From Tubulanus polymorphus (taxonomy: Eukaryota > Animalia > Nemertea): a stretch of 64,000 nt of DNA. This document shows positions 29,001 to 63,772 of this stretch, piece by piece. How positions within the stretch are numbered: position 1 is the first letter of the stretch; the number at the start of each line of letters is the position of its first letter. Both the position numbers and the translations under genes were made by a program. The notes below the pieces were generated by a model. That model was not told where the DNA came from and made no database searches. It worked only from the letters and a program-made list of their open reading frames with translations. The stretch lies in assembly GCF_964204645.1 (NCBI RefSeq), contig NC_134030.1, positions 7,048,778-7,112,777 on the forward strand, in the 5' to 3' direction.

Positions 29001-31761
29001 GAATATCGTATATCGACAGCGAATGATAGAAATATGATGTATTATCTACGGGATTTCATTACGCACCGAGCAATTTGATACCCGGAGAAGCAAATGATTT
29101 ATTGGACATACAGGTTATTAACACCGATCGATTCGTGTCAATATATACCCCCGATAAAACGCGATGCAGGGTATACTACCAAAATCATATATGTGACGTC
29201 ATGTGTTTATGGGTCCCTCGGTGGTGATCCGTTTTCGTTTAATTGCAAATATTAGCTTCTGCCGAGGTGAGATGGCGGGCTAATAGGTGCCTGAGGTGTG
29301 ATAACTACTCTTGAGGTAGTCGACCATTACTGTTCCTATTATTATCGCTAATTTCTTCGTCAAAACGATCCTATACCATTCGTGAGAATGAAGTCCCAAT
29401 TGCATCATTCAGTCATACCGACTCACGGAGAACTTTCACAGAAAACCAGCTGATCTCTACATCTTTTCTATGTAGTGAATTGTGTAGATATGAACAAGAA
29501 ATCTTCACCCGATAGTGGTACTACTACGCTGTCGGGTAAACTTTATAAAAGCACAATCGATTTTAAAGTTAATTCTTTTAAAAAAACAACCGATTCAGCC
29601 CTTCACTTTGATACCGGTGGGTGATTGGCACCAATGGAGCTTGCTAATGAGTATCTAATTTGAGTGTCCAATAATAAAATAAAGATGAAAAAATATCACT
29701 TAGGGCTTTTACGGGTAATCATGAACGAAATTTCGATCTAATGCTTACCGATATATCTTTTACTTTCATGATTCAAGCGCTGACGACGGTTCGACTGGAT
29801 TTATGGCGGGAATTCACGTGCTGGTGAATGAAAACGGATCCGTGCTGTGGCCGGTGCCCGTCAAATTGAAAAGCTCGTGCAAGGTGGACATCACGTACTT
29901 TCCGTTCGACGATCAAACGTGTATATTGAGGTTCGGGTCGTGGATCTACAGCATCAATTGGATGGATTTCGTCAGCACGCATCAGAACGTCGACCTTGAA
30001 AACTACGTCGATAACAGCGAATGGGATCTCATATCAGTCACGTTCGAAAAACGCGTCGAACGCGCAGGCGCATCGAACGAACGGCGTAGCGATTTGACTT
30101 ACACTTTACACATTCGCAGACGAACTTTTTATTACATATTCAACATAATCGTTCCGTGCATTATGTTATCCGTATTGACATTGCTGACGTTTTGGTTGCC
30201 GACGACGAGCGGGGAAAAAGTGACGCTCGGTTTATCGGTATTTTTAGCCTTCTCCATGTTCATGTTGCTTATCGCTGAAGAGGTACCTGCTACGTCGGAG
30301 TCAGTTCCCTTAATAGGTAATCAATCACCGACTGCAATTTGGATCCGTCACGCCCTGTAAAATATCATATTTCATACCACACGAAATTCTAATAATATCC
30401 ACGTTAGATTTCAATACGGATAAAGCTGCTTTTCCTTCTGTATTCGATTATCGACTATATTCGACTGTTTTTCCTTGGTGACATTTCGTGACCAAATTGT
30501 TAAGGGTATCATATTCCATCAGTTATGGCATGCGTGTAGAGGACAACATCGAATATTGGTTCACGCAACGTTGTCTCCGAACATTAAATGTCATCGGCAT
30601 GTTGGCGCCGATTGTAAAAAGTTTGCTAACCAGTATAACGACGATTATAGAGAGATTTAGCCCGCAACTAAAACCGTGTATTTTCTCTTTGCAGGCATTT
30701 ACCTAACGACAGTAATGACTATGACATCGGTTTCTGTCATATTAGCCGTGCTCGTCATTAACGTGTATAACAAAGGTTATAAATTCAGAGAGGTGCCTCC
30801 GTGGCTACGTACAATCATACTGAAATATCTGTCAGCTATAATGTGTATGAAACATGACATACCGCGGCTGGCTCATCTAATCAGATTGGTAAGTTGATAG
30901 AATGAGACCTAATCCATCATTCGCAAAGGTGGTGAAGGTCAATAATGGAGTTGTCCCAAAAATCTTGATGGTGTAACTTTAATTTGACATGAATGATCGA
31001 TTGGCCTTAGCGTCAAGTACCGATTTAGCATATCGCTCTTGAGATACGATCCAAGCATATCCATTTTATTTACAGTCAAGTAATTGTCAATGCCGTGTCA
31101 CTTTTAAATCTCAACACATTTTTGTACTAAATCATTGTAGCCAGAAGAAGATGGCGATGGATTACGATGTGACATACATTCCAACCCGGACGAGTGGCCG
31201 TTGCAGAAAATCTTGAAACGCGGCGATCACGTGCATCCGTCGGGCGAAAATGATTCGCGCACCGTCGTCATGGATCATGTCGATGTCAATCTGAACGGCC
31301 GCGAACAGTTGTTGACGCGTCGCAAAGCGAATTCCGTCTACGACAACTTATCGGATTCACCGAATTTGGGCGCCTACGAACAGGAAACCTCGCTGATTGA
31401 AGATTGCGACTCGCAGCGAAGTTCAATATCGGACGAACTGACGAATAACACGGCGTACTTGCAGGATCCGGACAGGCGGGTGCATTTCTCCTGCGAATGC
31501 GACAAAATGTCCATCAACGAAAACTCGGAAGAGATGTGCCAAAGACAAAACGAACTGATGAAACAGAAGGTTGTAATAGCCGAATGGCAACGAATCGCTG
31601 CCGTAATCGATAGACTTTTATTTTGGGCATATTTCGTGGGTACGATCGTGTCGTATGTGGTGATTTTGTTCATAATTCCTGGTTCGAAACCCGGTCTTAA
31701 CGACCAAAACCCCAACAATCAGCGCAGAGCTATGAATGTACCCGTTCACCATTACCAATGA
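26092..31761 (+). CDS. Cys-loop cation channel, nicotinic acetylcholine receptor-like non-alpha subunit (alpha9/10-like invertebrate clade), ~608 aa
   Basis: Exons 26092-26170 (signal peptide), 26672-26758, 27763-27914, 28290-28444, 29778-30316, 30695-30888 and 31141-31761 sum to 1827 nt in frame. Motifs: Cys-loop CKVDITYFPFDDQTC, M1 YYIFNIIVPC, GEK plus M2 VTLGLSVFLAFSMFML, M4 EWQRIAAVIDRLLFW. Loop C has no vicinal Cys-Cys. Confidence 0.93.
28066..28242. mobile_element. Penelope-like element-derived inverted repeat with a hammerhead-like core
   Basis: Long imperfect palindrome (tactttgaaggtt...gatttattt...gctttcgcta...cttcatca / tgatgaag...tagcgaaagc...aaataaatc...aaccttcaaagta) containing CTGATGA...CGAAA and AATAAA. 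Confidence 0.6.
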
Positions 31762-45544: not shown

Positions 45545-48500
45545 TTAACTGATCATCTCCTGGACTAGAGCCGTCATTTTTATCGAGCCGGATAAACTCA
45601 ACGACAAAAATTTTTCCATCGCCTTCGTGCTGACCGAACGCAGCGCCGGTAATCGTAGCAGCAGTTTGCCGTAGTGCCGAGCGTCGTTCGGATACGTGAG
45701 CGCCGTGTATGCCCGTAGACTGTTCAGGAATCGATTCTGTAAATTCGTCACTTTACTTTTCTCTTTAATGCCAGACGCATCTGAAAAACGCGAGTTCGGG
45801 CATATTATATGCCTTTAAAACGCCGAAAGGATCTCGAAACAAATCTTCAACGGTCGTGGTAAAATACTGAGCGGACAATTAATAGAATGGGCTAACTTAT
45901 CTAGTAGTATTGACAAATTCTACAATATCAAATACTGCAGGGGTTTGTGACATGCTCATTTTCTCACAGCGTACAGAGTGGTTCAGACCAATTTATGAGG
46001 ATTTTTTACAGGAACAAATTGGCCTTTGGTGAATATTGGTGCAGCCAATAAGAGTAATATTTTTGTAAGAGTTTTCCTTACCCGGGTAAGTTAAGACGAG
46101 CACATTCAGTAAGTTAAACTCTGTCGTATCCATGTAGACGTCTTTCATACGACTGACGAACTCGAGTGTAGCGTTGATCAAATCTTTACCCCAACCGACA
46201 TCGACGCCGTCCCTCGGTGAGAGAATAACGTTCGTACTGAAGCGTACGCGACCTGGAGTCTCCAGCGACCTGGAAATGGAAATATCAGTGAATAAATTGT
46301 GCTTCATATACAACAGAAGATGAGACTTGTCCCCAAAGTTTTTTTTTAGAAACTGATTAATCCTAAATAAAACTTCATTAGTGTGAAGTATGAACTCTTA
46401 CCTGAACGCCAGTCGAAGCACATTTAATTCCATGAAAGAACTTTTCAATAAAGCCATTTGATCTTCTAAACTAAGGTCGAGGAATCCTGTAAAAAGCAAC
46501 TACCAGGGTGTTAAAATAAACCAAGAATTAGAAAATATGACAGAAATATTTTGCGATGCCTGATTAAGAAATGAAAATACTGTCAAAATCCCTTAATTTC
46601 GAAAAATTTTACTCGAGATTTAGTTCTAATTTGGACATTATTAACATCATATTTCATATACGTGTATATAAAATGCATGTAAAACATTCTATTTAATCTG
46701 GATTGCTCATAAAATGGATCGATTTCATTCATCCAAATTGACCTGAATTCAGAGGGTTCTAGTATATGAACAAATACATTAGTACCGAGTTAGAAAATAT
46801 ATGGATAATCCATCAACCCTACCAGGGATTTGTACCCGATGGCATTGTGACTTTGCGCTGTATGATGAAAATTGTTCATTAGTACCTGGTACTTTCTTGG
46901 CCCACATTATAATGAGCTTCAACTCGGCGTATCCGTACTGCATTAGTTCACTGAGAGTGTTCGCAGATCCATCCTCGTTCCCTTCGAAAAGCTTATCTAT
47001 AAAAACGAACCCAAATACAATACAATTTCACATTACGCAAATGATGCAAATACATGTTAGACCTGTGGGCAATGAAGAGGAAGCCAATGGGCTGCTGAAT
47101 TACAGATTAGATTAGGTTCCCTACAACATTCAGATCACGTCAAGAAGTAGAAAATCAGGAATAGATCTGAGGATCCAAATACAGAGATCTCTATCAATAT
47201 CATTTGAAAATTTAAAACAAACTTATGTAGGTTATTCGGACTGGCTACAGTACAGAAGAACCCGCTTAATTCAGGTCATCCTGGACCAGTTTAAATTCTC
47301 CGGTTTATGGAGAAATCTGAATTAAATAACATATCATATTTTGAATTCATGAACAGATGGACCATGAATGGATTATGGTAGATCAAAAACTGGGTGAAAC
47401 TGGTCTAAATTTAGTGGGTTCGACTGTAATAGTATTGTAAATCATAACACAGATATGAATTGAATATAACTTACTATCAATGGTAGGTATAGATTCGGCT
47501 TTAGCGTTGATAATGCTGTTTATAAGCGCGCTATCCAGCGGCTCTGGGTCGACAAGCAGAGACGACATATCCTCATCATAACGACTCCGCTTTACACGAT
47601 GTTTCCCACCTGGAGTTCGATCCTCACGTACAGCTGAAAATCATCTGCATATATTGAGCAGGTGTTGGTTCTGTAACTGTTCATACACATTGTTTAATAC
47701 TATGTACGAAGTACTCTTAGCTTTGAATTAATGTTATTTGATACCCAGTACTCAGAACCCAGGACTCGAGATCAATATTACAGATGTAATATCAACTTTT
47801 AGCGACTTAACGCATTCGCGAACGTTATACGCTACTCAGTTTAGGGGTGCAGCTAGTAGTGTAACTGGTCCAGAATTTGTTGAAATATCAAAAGTTGGTT
47901 AAAAAGTTATGGTAGTACATAAGTAAGATAGTACTTCCATTTATAGTAGTTTTCACCACACAAATTAAGAAGAGCAATTTGACTTCAAGAAATGGAAGTT
48001 ATTCAATTGAAAATGAAAACTGAAAATGTTTTCATTTTCAAAATAAATTAAGAAGAGCAATTTGACTTCAAGAATTATAAGTTATTTAATTGAAAATGAT
48101 ATCTGAACTTATTTTTCATTTTTAAAATATTTTGAAGTAAATGACTTCACAGTGGTAGTCATCACTATGATCCAATCGAATTCATTTATTTTCAACTTCA
48201 GACTCAAGCCAAAATCTTAGAAAAACTAAAAAAAACTTTCAATGATGGCTATACTTATCATGAAGCGTTAAGAATGACCGCCTTTTTCTTGACATACCTT
48301 CTCTTGGCTTCCTTAGACAATTGACTGTCTGATAAACGACAATATGATGAAAATACTTTGAATGAGAATTTTTTACTTCATACCTTCTCTTTTCATGCCG
48401 ACATCACAACACTTCTGGAATCGGCAATACTGACAATTGTTTCGCGTGTACTTGTCGACGATGCAGTTCTGTTTCTCCTTGCAGGCGTAGTTCAAATTCT

Positions 48501-48972
48501 TCTGCACTGTACGTTTAAAAAATCCCTTACAACCTTCGCACGAGAACACGCCGTAATGAAACCCGGAGCCACGGTCGCAACAAACGAGACAAACTCCGAC
48601 GACCCCGTCGCCGCCGCCTCCCGACGCGCCGAACAACGACTGTCGATTGCTCGGTATTTCATCGGTCGCGATCGCCGCCGCGTTGCGACCTTCCATTATT
48701 TGCAGAGGGCGCTGCTCGAGCAGATCGGAACCGTCGCTCGCGGCGCGGTGACGATGGTGATGATCGACGAGGCCGTCCGCGACGGAGGTGTAAACATCGG
48801 GATGCGCGGACGCTTCGACGACTAGTTCGACGGACGACGTGTCTAACGACGTGGTCGAGGTAACGCCCTCATCCCCGACCGCGTGGTGGTGACCGATGTC
48901 GTAATCGGGGTGTAGTAAACGATCGTCTCCTCGAGGAATGCTGTCATTAGAATCGCTCGGTTCTCTATTCAT
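45545..48972 (-). CDS. Orphan nuclear receptor, probably NR7 (also called NR8) subfamily, ~455 aa
   Basis: Exons 48972-48384, 47633-47475, 46996-46886, 46486-46402, 46269-46082 and 45780-45545 sum to 1368 nt in frame. The C4 zinc fingers have P-box CEGCKG and the extension [13 protein letters not shown]. The LBD has [36 protein letters not shown] and an AF-2-like LVQEMI. The nuclear-receptor call is secure; the subfamily is from recall. Confidence 0.9.
47961..48130. repeat. Two-copy ~84-bp tandem duplication in a nuclear receptor intron
   Basis: aaattaagaagagcaatttgacttcaagaa occurs at ~47962 and ~48045, followed by similar sequence. Confidence 0.8.
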
Positions 48973-56806: not shown

Positions 56807-59800
56807 ATGACAGATTCGAAAAAAGTAAAAATCGAGGATAAACAAACATTTAAAGAAGCGCTTTCCGACTTCTCCAATGACACGGCATTTCACGGGGTTA
56901 GATACATAGGACACTCTCCAACTATCACCATCAGGTAAGCTTAGCATATCATAGTATAGGATCGTTAGGAAATACACCAATAATATTCACTTTTTGTCAT
57001 CTCAGATTGAAGTATTCATGCATTCCTGTGTATTAAAACTTGTTTCCACCAGCAGAACATATATCCAATTATTTTCCTGGTGTCCTGCATGTTGGTAGTA
57101 TTAAACATAAAATAGAAATGGTACGCTTGTCGGGCGAGTTGAATGAAAAATTTGGATAAAGAATAATGTTTTTATATAAGATATTGTACGACATCTGTTT
57201 TTACGTTAGTAAATCGCCACCAGGCTAAGTTTCCCTTGCTACAGCGGCACCAATCACCCATACTTTACTTAGAAAATGCAACAATTATGTGTAAACGCAA
57301 TTGCAAATAAGAACCAAAAGACCACAATAATTTACAACTTATCAATTTTGCGTACAAGGGGTCGGATGCATCATCAATGTAAAAAATTGTGTTCATGAAT
57401 TTAGTCTGCCTCAAGAGCGAATTTTATACATGATGATTAAAAATATTGAAAAAGACCCCCAGAGACGATGGAAATCGCAATTAGGATTTATTTCAATTGA
57501 AACAAAATTTATCCAATTGCAAATTGCAATTATTATGAATTGTTTGTTGGAATATATAATGAAATAGATATTTATTGCTCCAAGCATACGTATACAATGA
57601 GCACAGATAATCATTTCCATTACAACAGTACATGAACAAAATAGCTTTAAAATTAGTATGCTTTCATGCGATATTTGCATGTTGAATTAACAAGGAAAGT
57701 TTGGAGATGAGATCTTTATTCTAGCAGATAGTTTGTATTGCAAATACACTCGGTCATCGTATGCAAAAAATCTGGTAAATAACGGCGTCAAACTCAAATA
57801 TAAAACTTAAGTTCTCAAATATGAAATTCATCACCGCTACGATCACTGTCACATTGATAACATTTCATTCACCGTCGTGGTGTATTGATAAAACGACCTG
57901 ACTACTGGTAGTTTGCGATACTTTTTGTAGATGTATTTGGTTGATGTTGTTTTTGAGTATGACTGGGGTGTTTATCTACCAGGTGCACAACCGAGTCAAA
58001 TATTACATTTCATGGCCGGTTACCGTGGATATATCTCTCGAAAACAATCGAGGTCAGATACCATTCCCGGCAGTTACCATCTGCAACACAAACACTTTCA
58101 GGTATTTCAATGAGCTACACAAAACAAGCCGCATTGTACAATTTTTCTGATTAGCTTGTCTTTCCGATAAAAGGGCTTATTCTATTGTTAGATTATCTGA
58201 TACATATGAAGACGAGGTGTACGAGTCAATTTTTGAGTTTCACCGCCAGAATGAGAGACCAATAACGCAGATAACTGGAAATATGTCAACTACTCAAAAC
58301 ATTTCAATAACTCGAAGAAATTCGACGGCTTTCGATAATATGGATATGCGGGCATTGATATTGAAATATGGCCATCGTTTGAACGATACCGTGAAATCGT
58401 AAGTTAAAGCTAATCCGTAAATGAAAATTAATTAGTAATTTAAAATACACCCGTTTGATGTCGATAACTGTACATTCCATATTTATTTCAAAAAGCGCAA
58501 ATTTCGAATCCGAGAAATTGACAATTGCTAATCTGACGAGTGTTTTGACTGACTACGGACAATGTTTGGGGTTTAATCTTGATAAAAAAAAGCATCTCCA
58601 CAGCCAAGGGACTGGTAAGTGATGAAAGAAAATTAAATTACGCTTCTGAACGAAACTCATCTTCAATTATTCAATAAAAAGCCTTTTCTACAGGAGTAGC
58701 ATATGGATTGAACTTGTTGATCAACTTAGAACAGTACCAGAACATGGAAGGAGAACACAAATCTGCCGGACTAAAAGTTCTAGTTCATGATAAATATGAA
58801 GGAATTCTTATGAAAGATTTGTCGTTATCTGTACCACCATCGATGAGTGCATTTATCGATGTTCAAGCTAAAATGGTAAACATGTAGATCAGCATATTGC
58901 TCGATCCTAAATATCAGCGGTTAAGCACACACATTTAATCGGAAAAATTATCGAAGATAGATTCGTGAATATACTTGAAACTTCTCATTAACAGACGCTG
59001 AATCCCTTTGAATCCCTTTTTAAGAAAAACGAAAAACGAAAAATGTTCGTAATAAGTTAACCGTAAAATGTTCGTTGCAATAGTTGAGCAGAATCTTAAT
59101 TATTCATACATTCCACGTATGAATAACTTAGATTATATTTGATCAAAAAGCTACATATTTGGTCTATTTGGTATAATTTCAGACGACTGAATTGGAAGAA
59201 CCGTACGGAAAATGCAGAAAAAACGCGCAAAGACAAAGTATGTGTCTACACGACTGCTACGTACGGGTGACGTCATCAATATGTAAATGCATGCCGTTTT
59301 ATGCTGAAGATAATCCTGCAGGTCTACCATATTGTACTTTAAAACAGCACAGGGATTGCTACCATCTACAACTCGGTAATGAAAATGGAGAAGTGGTGTG
59401 CAGTGAGGTCGTTTCTAAACCCAGGGAGAGACCACTAAATAATTGGAAGGTTATATATAACAAAACAGTTAGTCTAGGGGTCAGATGAGTAATAGTGTGA
59501 TCTGTGTGCATTTTTGGCCAGCACACAGATCACAACGATCATTTGTCAGTCAATTAAAAATATTCAGCGATATTTTGCCAATGCGGCATTATTCCTGTTT
59601 ACTATATTTTGCCAATGGCCCGTTCTGATTGGCGAATTTACACAACGCATACGTGCTGAGGAGGCGCGTGACTTCAAGGTAAAATGGTACAAATACGGTG
59701 GTATTCGAACCCGGGCCAGAAATTTGCTAGCGTTGCGCCTAACCAGTAGACCACGGACACTCATAGCAAATAATTGCTCTTATGACAGAAATGAACTGCA

Positions 59801-62610
59801 GCACCTGATGGACGCACATCCATTGTGTTGTCATGTGTCGTGTGAGTACTTCGTTGAATAATGCGTAGTTTGTAATAGATGTATACAGATAGCCTTAAAT
59901 AACTTGCGTAGACATTAAAGTTTAATGATTTTATCGTTCTGCTTTTCGGTCAAGTAAATATTGAATTGAACCAGGACAACCTACCACCCCTCATTATGCT
60001 TATTAAACCAAACGTTTGCACCGACAACAAATTAGTAAAATAGACGTCTTAAAAAATTCAGAAATTGCCAGAATTTTAACTTACGTTAGATCTCATTTTT
60101 ATTTTACAATTGCGATTGGTATAACTTTTTTTAAACGGCCGTTAAGGCTTCATGTTTCGTCTGCAATTCACTGAAAATAGTTACGCAACTACGCACATTT
60201 CAGTGTTTTTGGCAGCTACACTCAATCGGCACCGTTCGTGACTAGCTTCACTGCGGAATTATCATTGATAAACATCCCCATATCACATCATCAACTTATA
60301 TTGTGCCTTAAAACCCTAACAGCCGAAATAATTGAAATGCACACACGATTTATATCATTGAAAACTGAGAATGGCCGTGTTTGTGTTCTGCTGCTTCGCA
60401 CGGTGGCGCAACCGCGCGGAGTGGGGCCGATACGTCTAGCACCTAGCATTGCGCCCCACGTGATCTGACAATATGTTATAAATAACATGTATCAATTCAG
60501 TATAATGTTTTTTTTTTGTAGCGAGAATGCGACAAAATGAAACAGTTTGCGGCACTAGTGAATGCCCACCACCATGCCAACATCTGACGTACGATTCACG
60601 AATCAGTTACGCGGCTCTGTCGAAGAGTATGGCGAGGAAAATGGCACGAAAAGAGAAACACGACCTGAACATGTTAGCAGATTACAGAAAGGCCAGAGAA
60701 ACACTGTATATTACTGACCCTCATCTGGCGGCGATGAGCTTCAATGTAGTTCAATCTTTCATTGAAACACAAAAAGAATCATTGATCGCCGTTACTAACG
60801 CCGTTAACTTTTTGGTAAATCAAAAAGAACTCTTTTCAGATTTGATCTACGTCGGGAACAGTCTCCAACACATTTCACGTTCTGTGCGCATGGCAAAAGA
60901 AATGTTTCTACGCTATACCGAGATGGAAGAAATTTCCACGATAGTTATTTCAGGTTTGAAAAGATTCAAAACGGCCATTACCGACATCCTTGAGTCAGAT
61001 TTTAAAGTTATCAACGATTTCCTAGCGAACTCGTCGGTTGTTTCACAAATGGACTTTCAAGCAGCGTCTTTAAACGTTGTTGGTGTATTTCAAAATATGC
61101 TTAATACGGCGTTATTGACTCGGTCAATTTTTCAGAATCTAATTATCAACCTGGTGCAAGATAAAACTGTAGCGAGGTATATGATCGATTTGCCCAAAAT
61201 CACACATCGCCATAGAATATTTCTCGAATCATGTGATAAAATGATTACTGCCTGCAATGATTCCAAAACAAAGTTGCGCGACATTCGCAACAGTCAACTA
61301 ACACGGGATTGGTATGGTTTTTCTAATCTAACCGGTCAGTTTTACTCCATTATCAGCGAATTCAAAAGATCGGCGATTGATCTGAAATCCGCATTAAAAG
61401 ACGTTGTTTATAGATTGGACCAACTCGAGAATTCCTTCAAAAGTCAAAAATCAGACTTAAGCTACGCATATTTGAAATATGCTCTCATCTTATACGCAAA
61501 CACTATCAGCAAACCTTTATTCTTTAAACCAGCTGGACGGTGGATTTCCCCGTCACCAATAAACGTAATAACTTTAGGTAAAGATATGGGCGAAATAAAT
61601 GCGAATGTCGCTCGACGGCTTAGATCAATGATCGCACACAAAATAATTTCCAACGCAGAACTGAATTCCCTGATGCTTGATAATAAAGACCTACTGGATA
61701 AGTTCACGCGAGACCTTCAAGTGTTCATGGACTCTTCGTTGAAAAAGATGGACATACTCGAAAAAAATCTGGTTCAACTTTGCCAACCTGCTATGGACTT
61801 CTTCTACAACTACATCAGTAATACCAATTCTACTCTCAATGTACGACAGTTGATGGAAATCAAGAAAAAACTGCAGTTTATCATCCAAGAAGATGTTAAA
61901 CTAACCAAAGTCATTGATGAATACCATAATGCACAAACTAAAATGTCAGTTGTGAACTCGATCTTAAACGATCATATGACAAAGTACCGGAATAGCATTG
62001 TTATTGATGAAGATTTTCTAAGGTTAGTATTCTGAGGAGTTTCCGCAAATTGTATTCTGGAGGAATTCTATGTATTGTGCTTAACTTAACCTCTGACATT
62101 TATTTCCAGAAATAATTACGTATACGTTTCAGTCTACTTTCGAACGCTGAGTTTGGAGACGTTGAAAAAGTCTAAAGGATATTTGTGGTTTTCGTTAATT
62201 TGTAAGTAAATAGTAGTTGATTATGCAAACAGGTTCTCATAGTGTGACGTAATAATGATATGACTTAAGATGTAAAAAAGCACTTTGATACAAAATTAAA
62301 TACTTAAAACTAAAGTTGAATTACGCAATTGATCAATTCATTGATTTTTTACAGATAGATAGGTCTATTGAATATTCAGTTAAAACGAACAGCCATCGTT
62401 TGGCTGATTCAGAAGTAGATCTTAATGTGAACAACGAATCCTACTGTTATTACATTCGATTCTCATTCTCATATTTTAGGTGATATAGGTGGTTCTGCCG
62501 GGCTTTATTTAGGCGCATCTCTATTAGCTATCGCCGAGGTCCTCTGGTTTTTCGGATCTCAACTCGTGTATCGCTTTATGCGGCTGCGACGAGTGCGCGC
62601 TGGTGAATAA
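56807..62610 (+). CDS. DEG/ENaC (amiloride-sensitive sodium channel family) subunit with a very large extracellular insertion, ~907 aa
   Basis: Exons 56807-56934, 57931-58101, 58192-58398, 58496-58614, 58694-58875, 59183-59375, 60522-62022, 62110-62201 and 62480-62610 sum to 2724 nt in frame. Motifs: pre-TM1 HG (TAFHGVRYI), TM1, FPAVTICN, TDYGQC, a 10-Cys thumb, and TM2 CDIGGSAGLYLGASLL with the GAS filter. Confidence 0.93.
59600..59762 (-). mobile_element. tRNA-derived SINE-like remnant
   Basis: The minus strand has A-box TGGTCTACTGG and B-box GGTTCGAATACC, but the acceptor and T stems do not pair. The downstream boundary is uncertain. Confidence 0.5.
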
Positions 62611-63653: not shown

Positions 63654-63772
63654 ATGGCATCGGTTAAAATCGAAGACAAACAAACTTTTAAAGAAGCGCT
63701 TTCCGACTTCTCCAATGACACGGCATTTCACGGGGTTAGATACATAGGACACTCTCCAACTATCACCATCAG
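63654..63772 (+). CDS. First coding exon of a second, tandem DEG/ENaC paralogue (runs off the window)
   Basis: MASVKIEDKQTFKEALSDFSNDTAFHGVRYIGHSPTITIR followed by a GTAAGC donor; nearly identical to exon 56807-56934. Confidence 0.85.

Follow-up and report, generated by a model that had tools for sequence, protein, structure and literature searches.

The 64,000-nt window analyzed here (C6:7048778-7112777, contig NC_134030.1; positions given without a contig are those of the window) comes from the palaeonemertean ribbon worm Tubulanus polymorphus and contains a nine-exon gene with the sequence features of the DEG/ENaC channel family. Its seventh exon (60522-62022, + strand) encodes a domain of about 450 additional residues within the knuckle of the putative channel subunit. 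We consider it rather probable that this is a constitutive coding exon and that the knuckle domain is a diversifying extracellular recognition module acting on channel gating. Members of the DEG/ENaC family respond to protons, peptides, salt and force by means of one compact extracellular domain, in which the finger is the usual determinant of specificity. The knuckle packs next to the finger and forms the top of the trimer, as established by ASIC structures. To our knowledge, it consists of two short helices in all solved members of the family.

Frame 2 of the + strand is free of stop codons from 60506 to 62032, corresponding to 509 codons. With a random stop-codon rate of about 6.5 % at a G+C content of about 39 %, the chance of 509 open codons is, by our own arithmetic, about 1e-15. 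A polypyrimidine tract and AG terminate at 60521 directly 5' of the exon, so that the acceptor side reads ...ttttttttgtAG/CG at 60521/60522, and the donor AAG/GTtagt lies at 62022/62023, giving a length of 1501 nt. The eight other exons measure 92-207 nt. These values agree with the original prediction, made from the letters of this DNA, of an open 1501-nt exon among short ones, and the motifs quoted there, YDSRISYAALS, the junction-encoded FL(R)NNYVYVSVYF and FKRSAIDLKSALKDVVYRLDQLENSFK, were all found. For the gene model, the RefSeq paralog P0001 served as a tblastn guide and the splice junctions were then read directly. All introns are of the GT-AG type and the coding sequence comprises 2724 nt, that is 907 codons and a stop. 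The first two bases of exon 7 belong to a split codon; as its 1501 nt are not divisible by three, loss of the exon would break the frame ahead of the second transmembrane segment (TM2).

Exons were scanned individually against Pfam, with the RefSeq models of paralogs providing the full-length context. Matches to the ASC family (PF00858, curated cut-off 23.6 bits) are colinear along the gene, with profile positions 24-78 in exon 2, 202-262 in exon 5, 274-336 in exon 6, 354-420 at the start of exon 7 and 433-455 in exon 9. Exon 2 (54.6 bits) and exon 5 (26.0 bits) are above the cut-off. Exon 6, the start of exon 7 (residues 3-83, 23.1 bits) and exon 9 lie marginally below it when scanned singly, and the full-length paralog P0002 reaches 254 bits. 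As read from the sequence, a single large extracellular domain lies between a first transmembrane segment (TM1; CIWLMLFLSMTGVFIYQV, exon 2) and TM2 (GLYLGASLLAIAEVLWFF, exon 9), and the cytoplasmic ends are short. The FHG motif is found in exon 1 and the selectivity-filter GAS motif (LGASLL) in exon 9; five Tubulanus paralogs share all cysteines of exons 6 and 7, and those of P0002 align with the thumb cysteines of ASIC2. With the ASC profile, two transmembrane segments, the HG and GAS motifs and the thumb and palm cysteines, the gene carries the sequence hallmarks of a DEG/ENaC member. The intact core with HG and GAS motifs claimed at the outset is thus supported, also by FPAVTICN and the cysteine-rich thumb.

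Closest among solved cores are ASIC2 and ASIC1 (6l6p, 6ave, 2qts), with E-values of 9e-38 to 1e-31 for P0002. HG motif, TM1, cysteine-rich thumb, beta10, alpha6, alpha7, beta11-12 and the GAS-containing TM2 follow in the same order. Whereas ASIC has zero residues between alpha6 and alpha7, the Tubulanus protein has about 450-460 at this position, and unlike ASIC the Tubulanus gene is part of a large lineage-specific expansion. We describe the gene as ASIC-like and refrain from assigning it to the ASICs proper.

The position of the insert follows from the alignment of P0002 with human ASIC2 (PDB 6l6p, E 9e-38). P0002 residues 12-363 correspond to ASIC2 19-391, ending with ...SKTSAKYLEK, and the alignment resumes with P0002 826-891 on ASIC2 390-455, beginning with EKKFNKSEKYISEN. 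Because it reaches ASIC2 residue 391 and starts again from 390, 462 residues were added and none deleted, exactly between alpha6 and alpha7. The insert borders of the gene in the window, ...LSKSMARKMARK and ...TKYRNSIVIDEDFL, match those of P0002. A knuckle insertion of about 460 residues had been predicted; it is borne out and now placed more precisely. Within exon 7, the stretch 60524-60622 (+) encodes the end of the thumb (CGTSECPPPC) and beta10 (YDSRISYAALS), as indicated by the ASC match and the P0002-ASIC2 alignment. It is followed at 60623-61996 (+, 458 codons) by an alpha6 extension and the insert domain of about 450 residues, predicted to be all-helical and supported by structure prediction, paralog identity and substitution rates. 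The remaining 61997-62022 (+) codes for alpha7 and the lead into beta11 (IVIDEDFL), a conserved C-terminal border whose P0002 equivalent aligns to ASIC2 KKFNKSEKYISEN. Located between TM1 and TM2, the insert should be extracellular by topology; its maximum 19-residue Kyte-Doolittle mean is 1.16, with no hydrophobic segment.

With 1.7 % Gly, 1.5 % Pro and 0.6 % Cys the insert has the low content of these residues that had been noted from the sequence, and the N-glycosylation sequons (N-x-S/T) noted along with it number four; of these, the one at insert residue 136 is shared by 11 of 13 paralog sequences. An AlphaFold2 model, based on an alignment of only 13 paralogous inserts, shows a mean predicted local distance difference test (pLDDT) of 87.7 and a predicted template-modelling score (pTM) of 0.74, and comprises about ten helices, each 25-54 residues long, plus a single small hairpin. 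In VIA alignments, insert residues of about 90-270 map onto single four- or five-helix bundles, and the N- and C-terminal helices map jointly onto other four-helix bundles (model ranges 38-456 and 61-432). In our reading of the model, the insert would therefore be composed of a distal bundle and a proximal bundle built from both chain ends, the latter being the geometry required for a domain inserted into a loop. A domain of about 54 kDa before glycans is predicted, N-glycosylatable and all-helical, in which antiparallel bundles let the chain exit and re-enter at one point. Of the two shapes originally suggested, a helical bundle or a trimeric stalk, the model favours the former, and its compact, self-folded antiparallel monomer makes a simple stalk of trimeric coiled coils less likely.

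No specific relative of this domain was found in any of the searches. The Pfam scan of exon 7 returned just the ASC core in its first part and a DUF1722 match below threshold, a PDB sequence search with the insert gave no match under E 0.1, and Foldseek of the model against the PDB none at E <= 0.001. VIA alignment against 48,161 chains retrieved generic helical bundles only; the nearest comparable systems are bacterial chemoreceptor and kinase four-helix-bundle sensors (1lih, 6s18, 8bsa, 4k0d, 8f7n) and the rod bundles of talin and vinculin. For four-helix-bundle sensor domains (4HB_MCP etc.) there was neither a profile match nor a structural match clear of unrelated helical bundles. In the ESM Atlas, the shape search stayed at template-modelling scores of at most 0.23 and the feature search gave no usable match. 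A HMMER profile of 11 inserts, run against 1.84 billion representatives, recovered Tubulanus proteins only, apart from the weak, repetitive P0006. Comparison of the two insert halves by hhalign revealed no internal duplication (E 0.19). A match to an already characterized domain, which had been named as a refuting case in the original prediction, was not encountered in these Foldseek, Pfam, PDB and Atlas searches.

The 268 Mb genome contains at least 18 insert-bearing genes. Nine are arranged in tandem on C6 at 7.109-7.175 Mb; the eight other cluster inserts are 51-78 % identical to that in the window, align with it and each other nearly gap-free, and none contains a stop. Copies on C2 and C10 (23-27 % identity) also have an open frame. 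Further copies are located on C6 at 2.30, 2.33 and 9.87 Mb, on C4 at 5.44 Mb (two) and 8.83 Mb and on C8 at 15.19 Mb, distant paralogs being 18-28 % identical over the whole insert. Outside the cluster, C2 and C10, the sole stops are single TAA codons, one per match in the four P0004-type matches and located at the intron. In P0004- and P0005-type paralogs the insert is interrupted by an intron, at about insert residue 390 or 311 (C6:2304189-2305770, C6:2333403-2335284, C6:9867226-9869314, C4:8828544-8830645, C8:15192257-15195660). The single-exon insert of the original prediction therefore holds for this gene and is not universal in the subfamily. One cluster paralog (L008:3701-5506, -, the same gene as L001:1201-3006) shows its exon 6 and exon 7 regions in one open frame of 602 codons; about 30 intervening codons are open, and the intron may have been lost or may be open by chance.

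The ratio of nonsynonymous to synonymous substitution rates (dN/dS) of the insert, obtained by the Nei-Gojobori method, is 0.33-0.62 and alike in every third, indicating from sequence comparison that the insert is coding and under purifying selection. Compared with the eight cluster paralogs, most core exons are 75-100 % identical, finger exon 3 61-79 % and exon 7 53-78 %. By region, dN/dS amounts to 0.18-0.29 in the core, 0.52-0.97 in the finger exon and 0.44-0.53 in the insert. Insert and finger exon hence evolve 2-3 times faster than pore and core. In the more distant cluster paralogs (C6:7105000-7177000), the synonymous rate dS of the core is about 0.28, about half of the 0.5-0.7 found for the insert, which suggests that gene conversion homogenizes the core exons while the insert escapes.

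The occurrence of long-insert channels elsewhere, which had been considered possible at the outset for other spiralians, could be substantiated for other invertebrate assemblies. Four RefSeq paralogs of Tubulanus polymorphus itself (XP_074641359, XP_074658670, XP_074652827 and XP_074657246) have the same build and an insert homologous to that in the window at 18-27 % identity over the full length. They sit on other chromosomes or elsewhere on C6, comprise two subtypes with an intron inside the insert, and are labelled 'uncharacterized protein' or 'degenerin-like protein del-10', the latter being an automatic name transfer. A full-length profile search also revealed long DEG/ENaC proteins in ENA ERZ25069866 and ERZ25069870 (P0007 family, nine proteins), and a 15.9 kb contig of Logan SRR23372229 (L013) carries three or more long DEG/ENaC frames in tandem (745+, 753 and 831+ codons). 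The 753-codon frame of the latter, P0009, is AT-rich and Asn/Lys/Ile-rich and has a region of about 490 residues after beta10. The alignment of P0007 with ASIC2 breaks off at residue 374 and resumes at 386; the roughly 470 residues separating the two parts are predicted to be all-helical (pLDDT 76). Similar to the Tubulanus protein, P0007 and P0009 thus combine an ASIC-like core, about 470-490 inserted residues at the corresponding point of the knuckle and a multi-gene expansion; P0007-family genes are single open frames, unlike the nine-exon Tubulanus gene. Profile-profile comparison of the Tubulanus with the P0007 and P0009 inserts by hhalign showed no similarity beyond the final ~31 columns, which are the alpha7 border (E 0.055). 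The helix patterns of the Tubulanus and P0007 AlphaFold2 models were loosely colinear only, and this comparison was not used as evidence.

Full-text literature searches found no description of a DEG/ENaC channel with this knuckle-insert design. The finger 'GRIP' insert of ENaC and the extra domains of nematode degenerins are likewise lineage-specific peripheral extracellular modules that tune gating. In contrast to the knuckle insert of Tubulanus, they are located in the finger or after TM1, have a far smaller size and are not known to be all-helical bundles.

Expression was addressed with three sequencing runs containing exon 7. Two of them, X1 and X3, cover introns and thus behave as DNA, whereas X2 covers no introns. 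Exact-match contigs of X2 extend over 61505-61748 and 61762-62013, and a 115-nt contig joins 37 nt ending at 62022 to 78 nt starting at 62110, omitting 87 nt with GT..AG borders. This RNA-type evidence indicates that the final 518 nt of exon 7 are present in mRNA and that the donor at 62022 is used. Support from RNA for exon inclusion, a check proposed with the original prediction, extends to this part and to the junction 62022/62110. The RefSeq paralog models P0002-P0005 retain the whole insert.

Tandem expansion, a conserved pore and fast-evolving outer surfaces together form the signature of a receptor repertoire, and for this reason we favour the recognition module. It is supported by the tandem array and by the lower identity and higher dN/dS of insert and finger in comparison to the core. 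Each subunit of the presumably trimeric channel would bear an insert domain at its apex, over an ordinary pore. There, the domain might bind a ligand or a partner protein, and its state could be relayed via alpha6 and alpha7 to the adjacent finger and the upper palm, and thence to the gate. This arrangement would be analogous to the four-helix-bundle sensors of bacterial chemoreceptors or to the lineage-specific regulatory finger insert of ENaC.

Several points weigh against this interpretation. The functional role of the insert is one that we infer from sequence, and a dN/dS of 0.4-0.5 is compatible with a tolerated, weakly constrained appendage as well. Run X2 covers the last third of exon 7 only, leaving 60522-61504 and exons 1-6 and 9 uncovered, and its type (RNA) was deduced from the splice junction and is not recorded; with contigs of this kind, the gap over 60522-61504 proves nothing. 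The gene in the window is without a RefSeq model of its own among the matches. Further, RefSeq P0001 (779 aa, 'degenerin-like protein del-10') excises 161 in-frame residues of its insert as a GT-AG intron.

A more far-reaching proposal, which we put forward tentatively, is that these genes form an undescribed class of DEG/ENaC receptors. Its primary sensor of macromolecular or chemical cues would be a knuckle 'crown' of about 450 residues instead of the finger/thumb pocket, and gating would be controlled from the apex. Such a class may comprise about 18 receptors in one ribbon worm and may have arisen, or diverged past recognition, between alpha6 and alpha7 in at least two further animal lineages.

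The main rival, which we regard as rather unlikely, is that the insert serves as a mechanical tether or anchors the channel in the matrix. Standing out from the channel apex, the glycosylated helical domain would bind extracellular matrix or cuticle-like material, and its displacement would pull the knuckle and gate the channel in a force-from-filament manner. According to PMC7958617 (citing Knoepp et al. 2020), N-glycans in the palm and knuckle of ENaC are needed for the response to shear force, and an added knuckle glycan raises this response. The conserved sequon at insert residue 136 would fit such a role. However, no matrix-binding domain appeared in the Pfam scan, the structural matches are generic for helical bundles, and a common matrix would not call for 18 divergent versions or a fast-evolving surface.

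The insert might also act as a crown for assembly and partner selection, where three inserts pack round the three-fold axis and choose the co-assembling paralogs with no direct sensing. Many co-clustered paralogs with near-identical cores and differing inserts would be in accordance with this, as would the location at the top of the trimer, which for the insert is supported by the P0002-ASIC2 alignment. We consider this lesser rival improbable, given that the monomer model is a self-contained bundle (pTM 0.74) and that DEG/ENaC trimers form without such a domain.

An annotation or splicing artefact, in which internal splicing removes most of exon 7, the knuckle stays short and the open frame is incidental, appears very unlikely. 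Besides the stretch 60522-61504 without RNA contig, it is the P0001 model that speaks for it. At this locus (C6:7133231-7134865, L006:1232-2866, -; paralog at C6:7133279-7134649), the intron runs from the donor TTG/GTAAAC to the acceptor TTAAAG/, and an upstream exon donor is used, so that the alpha7 segment is dropped. The donor GT, however, belongs to a Val codon found only in that paralog, the gene in the window having Lys in this column, and the excised stretch shows a dN/dS of 0.33-0.69, like the remaining insert. Since the donor codon is unique, the constraint equal and the insert kept in four other RefSeq models, the pattern is probably not general; the trimming in P0001 is likely a model artefact or a paralog-specific isoform. 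Moreover, every cluster paralog, nine in total, has an uninterrupted frame, as do the copies on C2 and C10, the confident AlphaFold2 fold spans the whole insert, and the donor at 62022 is used in the RNA-like contigs.

That the insert is captured transposon or foreign sequence, or the cluster a set of decaying pseudogenes, can practically be dismissed despite high-copy repeats in the adjoining upstream intron (59486-59684 and 60083-60480), because every genomic insert match, and thus every copy, lies inside a DEG/ENaC gene, no transposon family matched in the Pfam scan, no free-standing relative was found among the 1.84 billion representatives, and the cluster copies are under purifying selection without stops or frameshifts. 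A transposon origin had been named as a refuting case in the original prediction. The repeats themselves, in intron 6 just upstream of exon 7, reach a summed contig depth of 18,000-57,000 in run X1, where unique sequence reaches about 26-30, and many contigs end loosely at 59493/59534 and 60397/60439. In all probability, these repeats represent fragments of transposons.

The remaining exons, all on the + strand, complete the gene. Exon 1 (56807-56934; tblastn of P0001, donor GT) encodes the start codon, the cytoplasmic N-terminus and the FHG motif. Exon 2 (57931-58101), with AG/GT borders and also a PF00858 match in the genome search, contributes TM1 and the post-TM1 FPAVTICN. The finger region with several sequons resides in exon 3 (58192-58398), the fastest-evolving core exon. 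Parts of the beta-ball and palm follow in exon 4 (58496-58614; LTDYGQC; tblastn of P0001 and splice borders) and exon 5 (58694-58875), and the cysteine-rich thumb in exon 6 (59183-59375). Downstream of exon 7, exon 8 (62110-62201) encodes beta11-beta12 (NNYVYVSVYF...) with 90-100 % identity among paralogs and the RNA-like junction to exon 7, and exon 9 (62480-62610) encodes TM2, the GAS motif, a short C-terminus and the stop at 62608-62610.

The next tandem paralog starts within the window, with exon 1 at 63654-63772 (+) and an N-terminus, MASVKIEDKQ...FHGVRYIGHSPTITI, almost identical to that of the gene studied. It extends past the window end, and its large exon lies at C6:7116893-7118266. 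Two single-exon open frames of 852 codons (L005:6170-8725, -, and L010:4984-7539, +) are scattered among the channel genes of the cluster. The former contains a secretin-family/adhesion-type seven-transmembrane domain (Pfam 7tm_2, E 2e-26) and a cysteine-rich N-terminus, and the latter is closely similar to it in sequence. Elsewhere in the window, an exon of a Cys-loop ligand-gated channel (29803-30360, +; Neur_chan_LBD and Neur_chan_memb, E 7e-28) and a nuclear-receptor C4 zinc-finger exon (48373-48972, -; zf-C4, E 5e-30) were observed, both unrelated to the gene described.

For annotation, our analysis holds a warning, as one RefSeq model cuts the insert as an intron and several genes of the cluster seem to be without models. 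A DEG/ENaC protein with half of its length in a separate predicted domain on the knuckle points to an unexplored mode of coupling between module and gate, and offers a natural test of the control of the knuckle over gating. The site between alpha6 and alpha7 appears to be permissive for insertions and may be usable for channel engineering. These genes would also constitute a candidate family of invertebrate sensory receptors.

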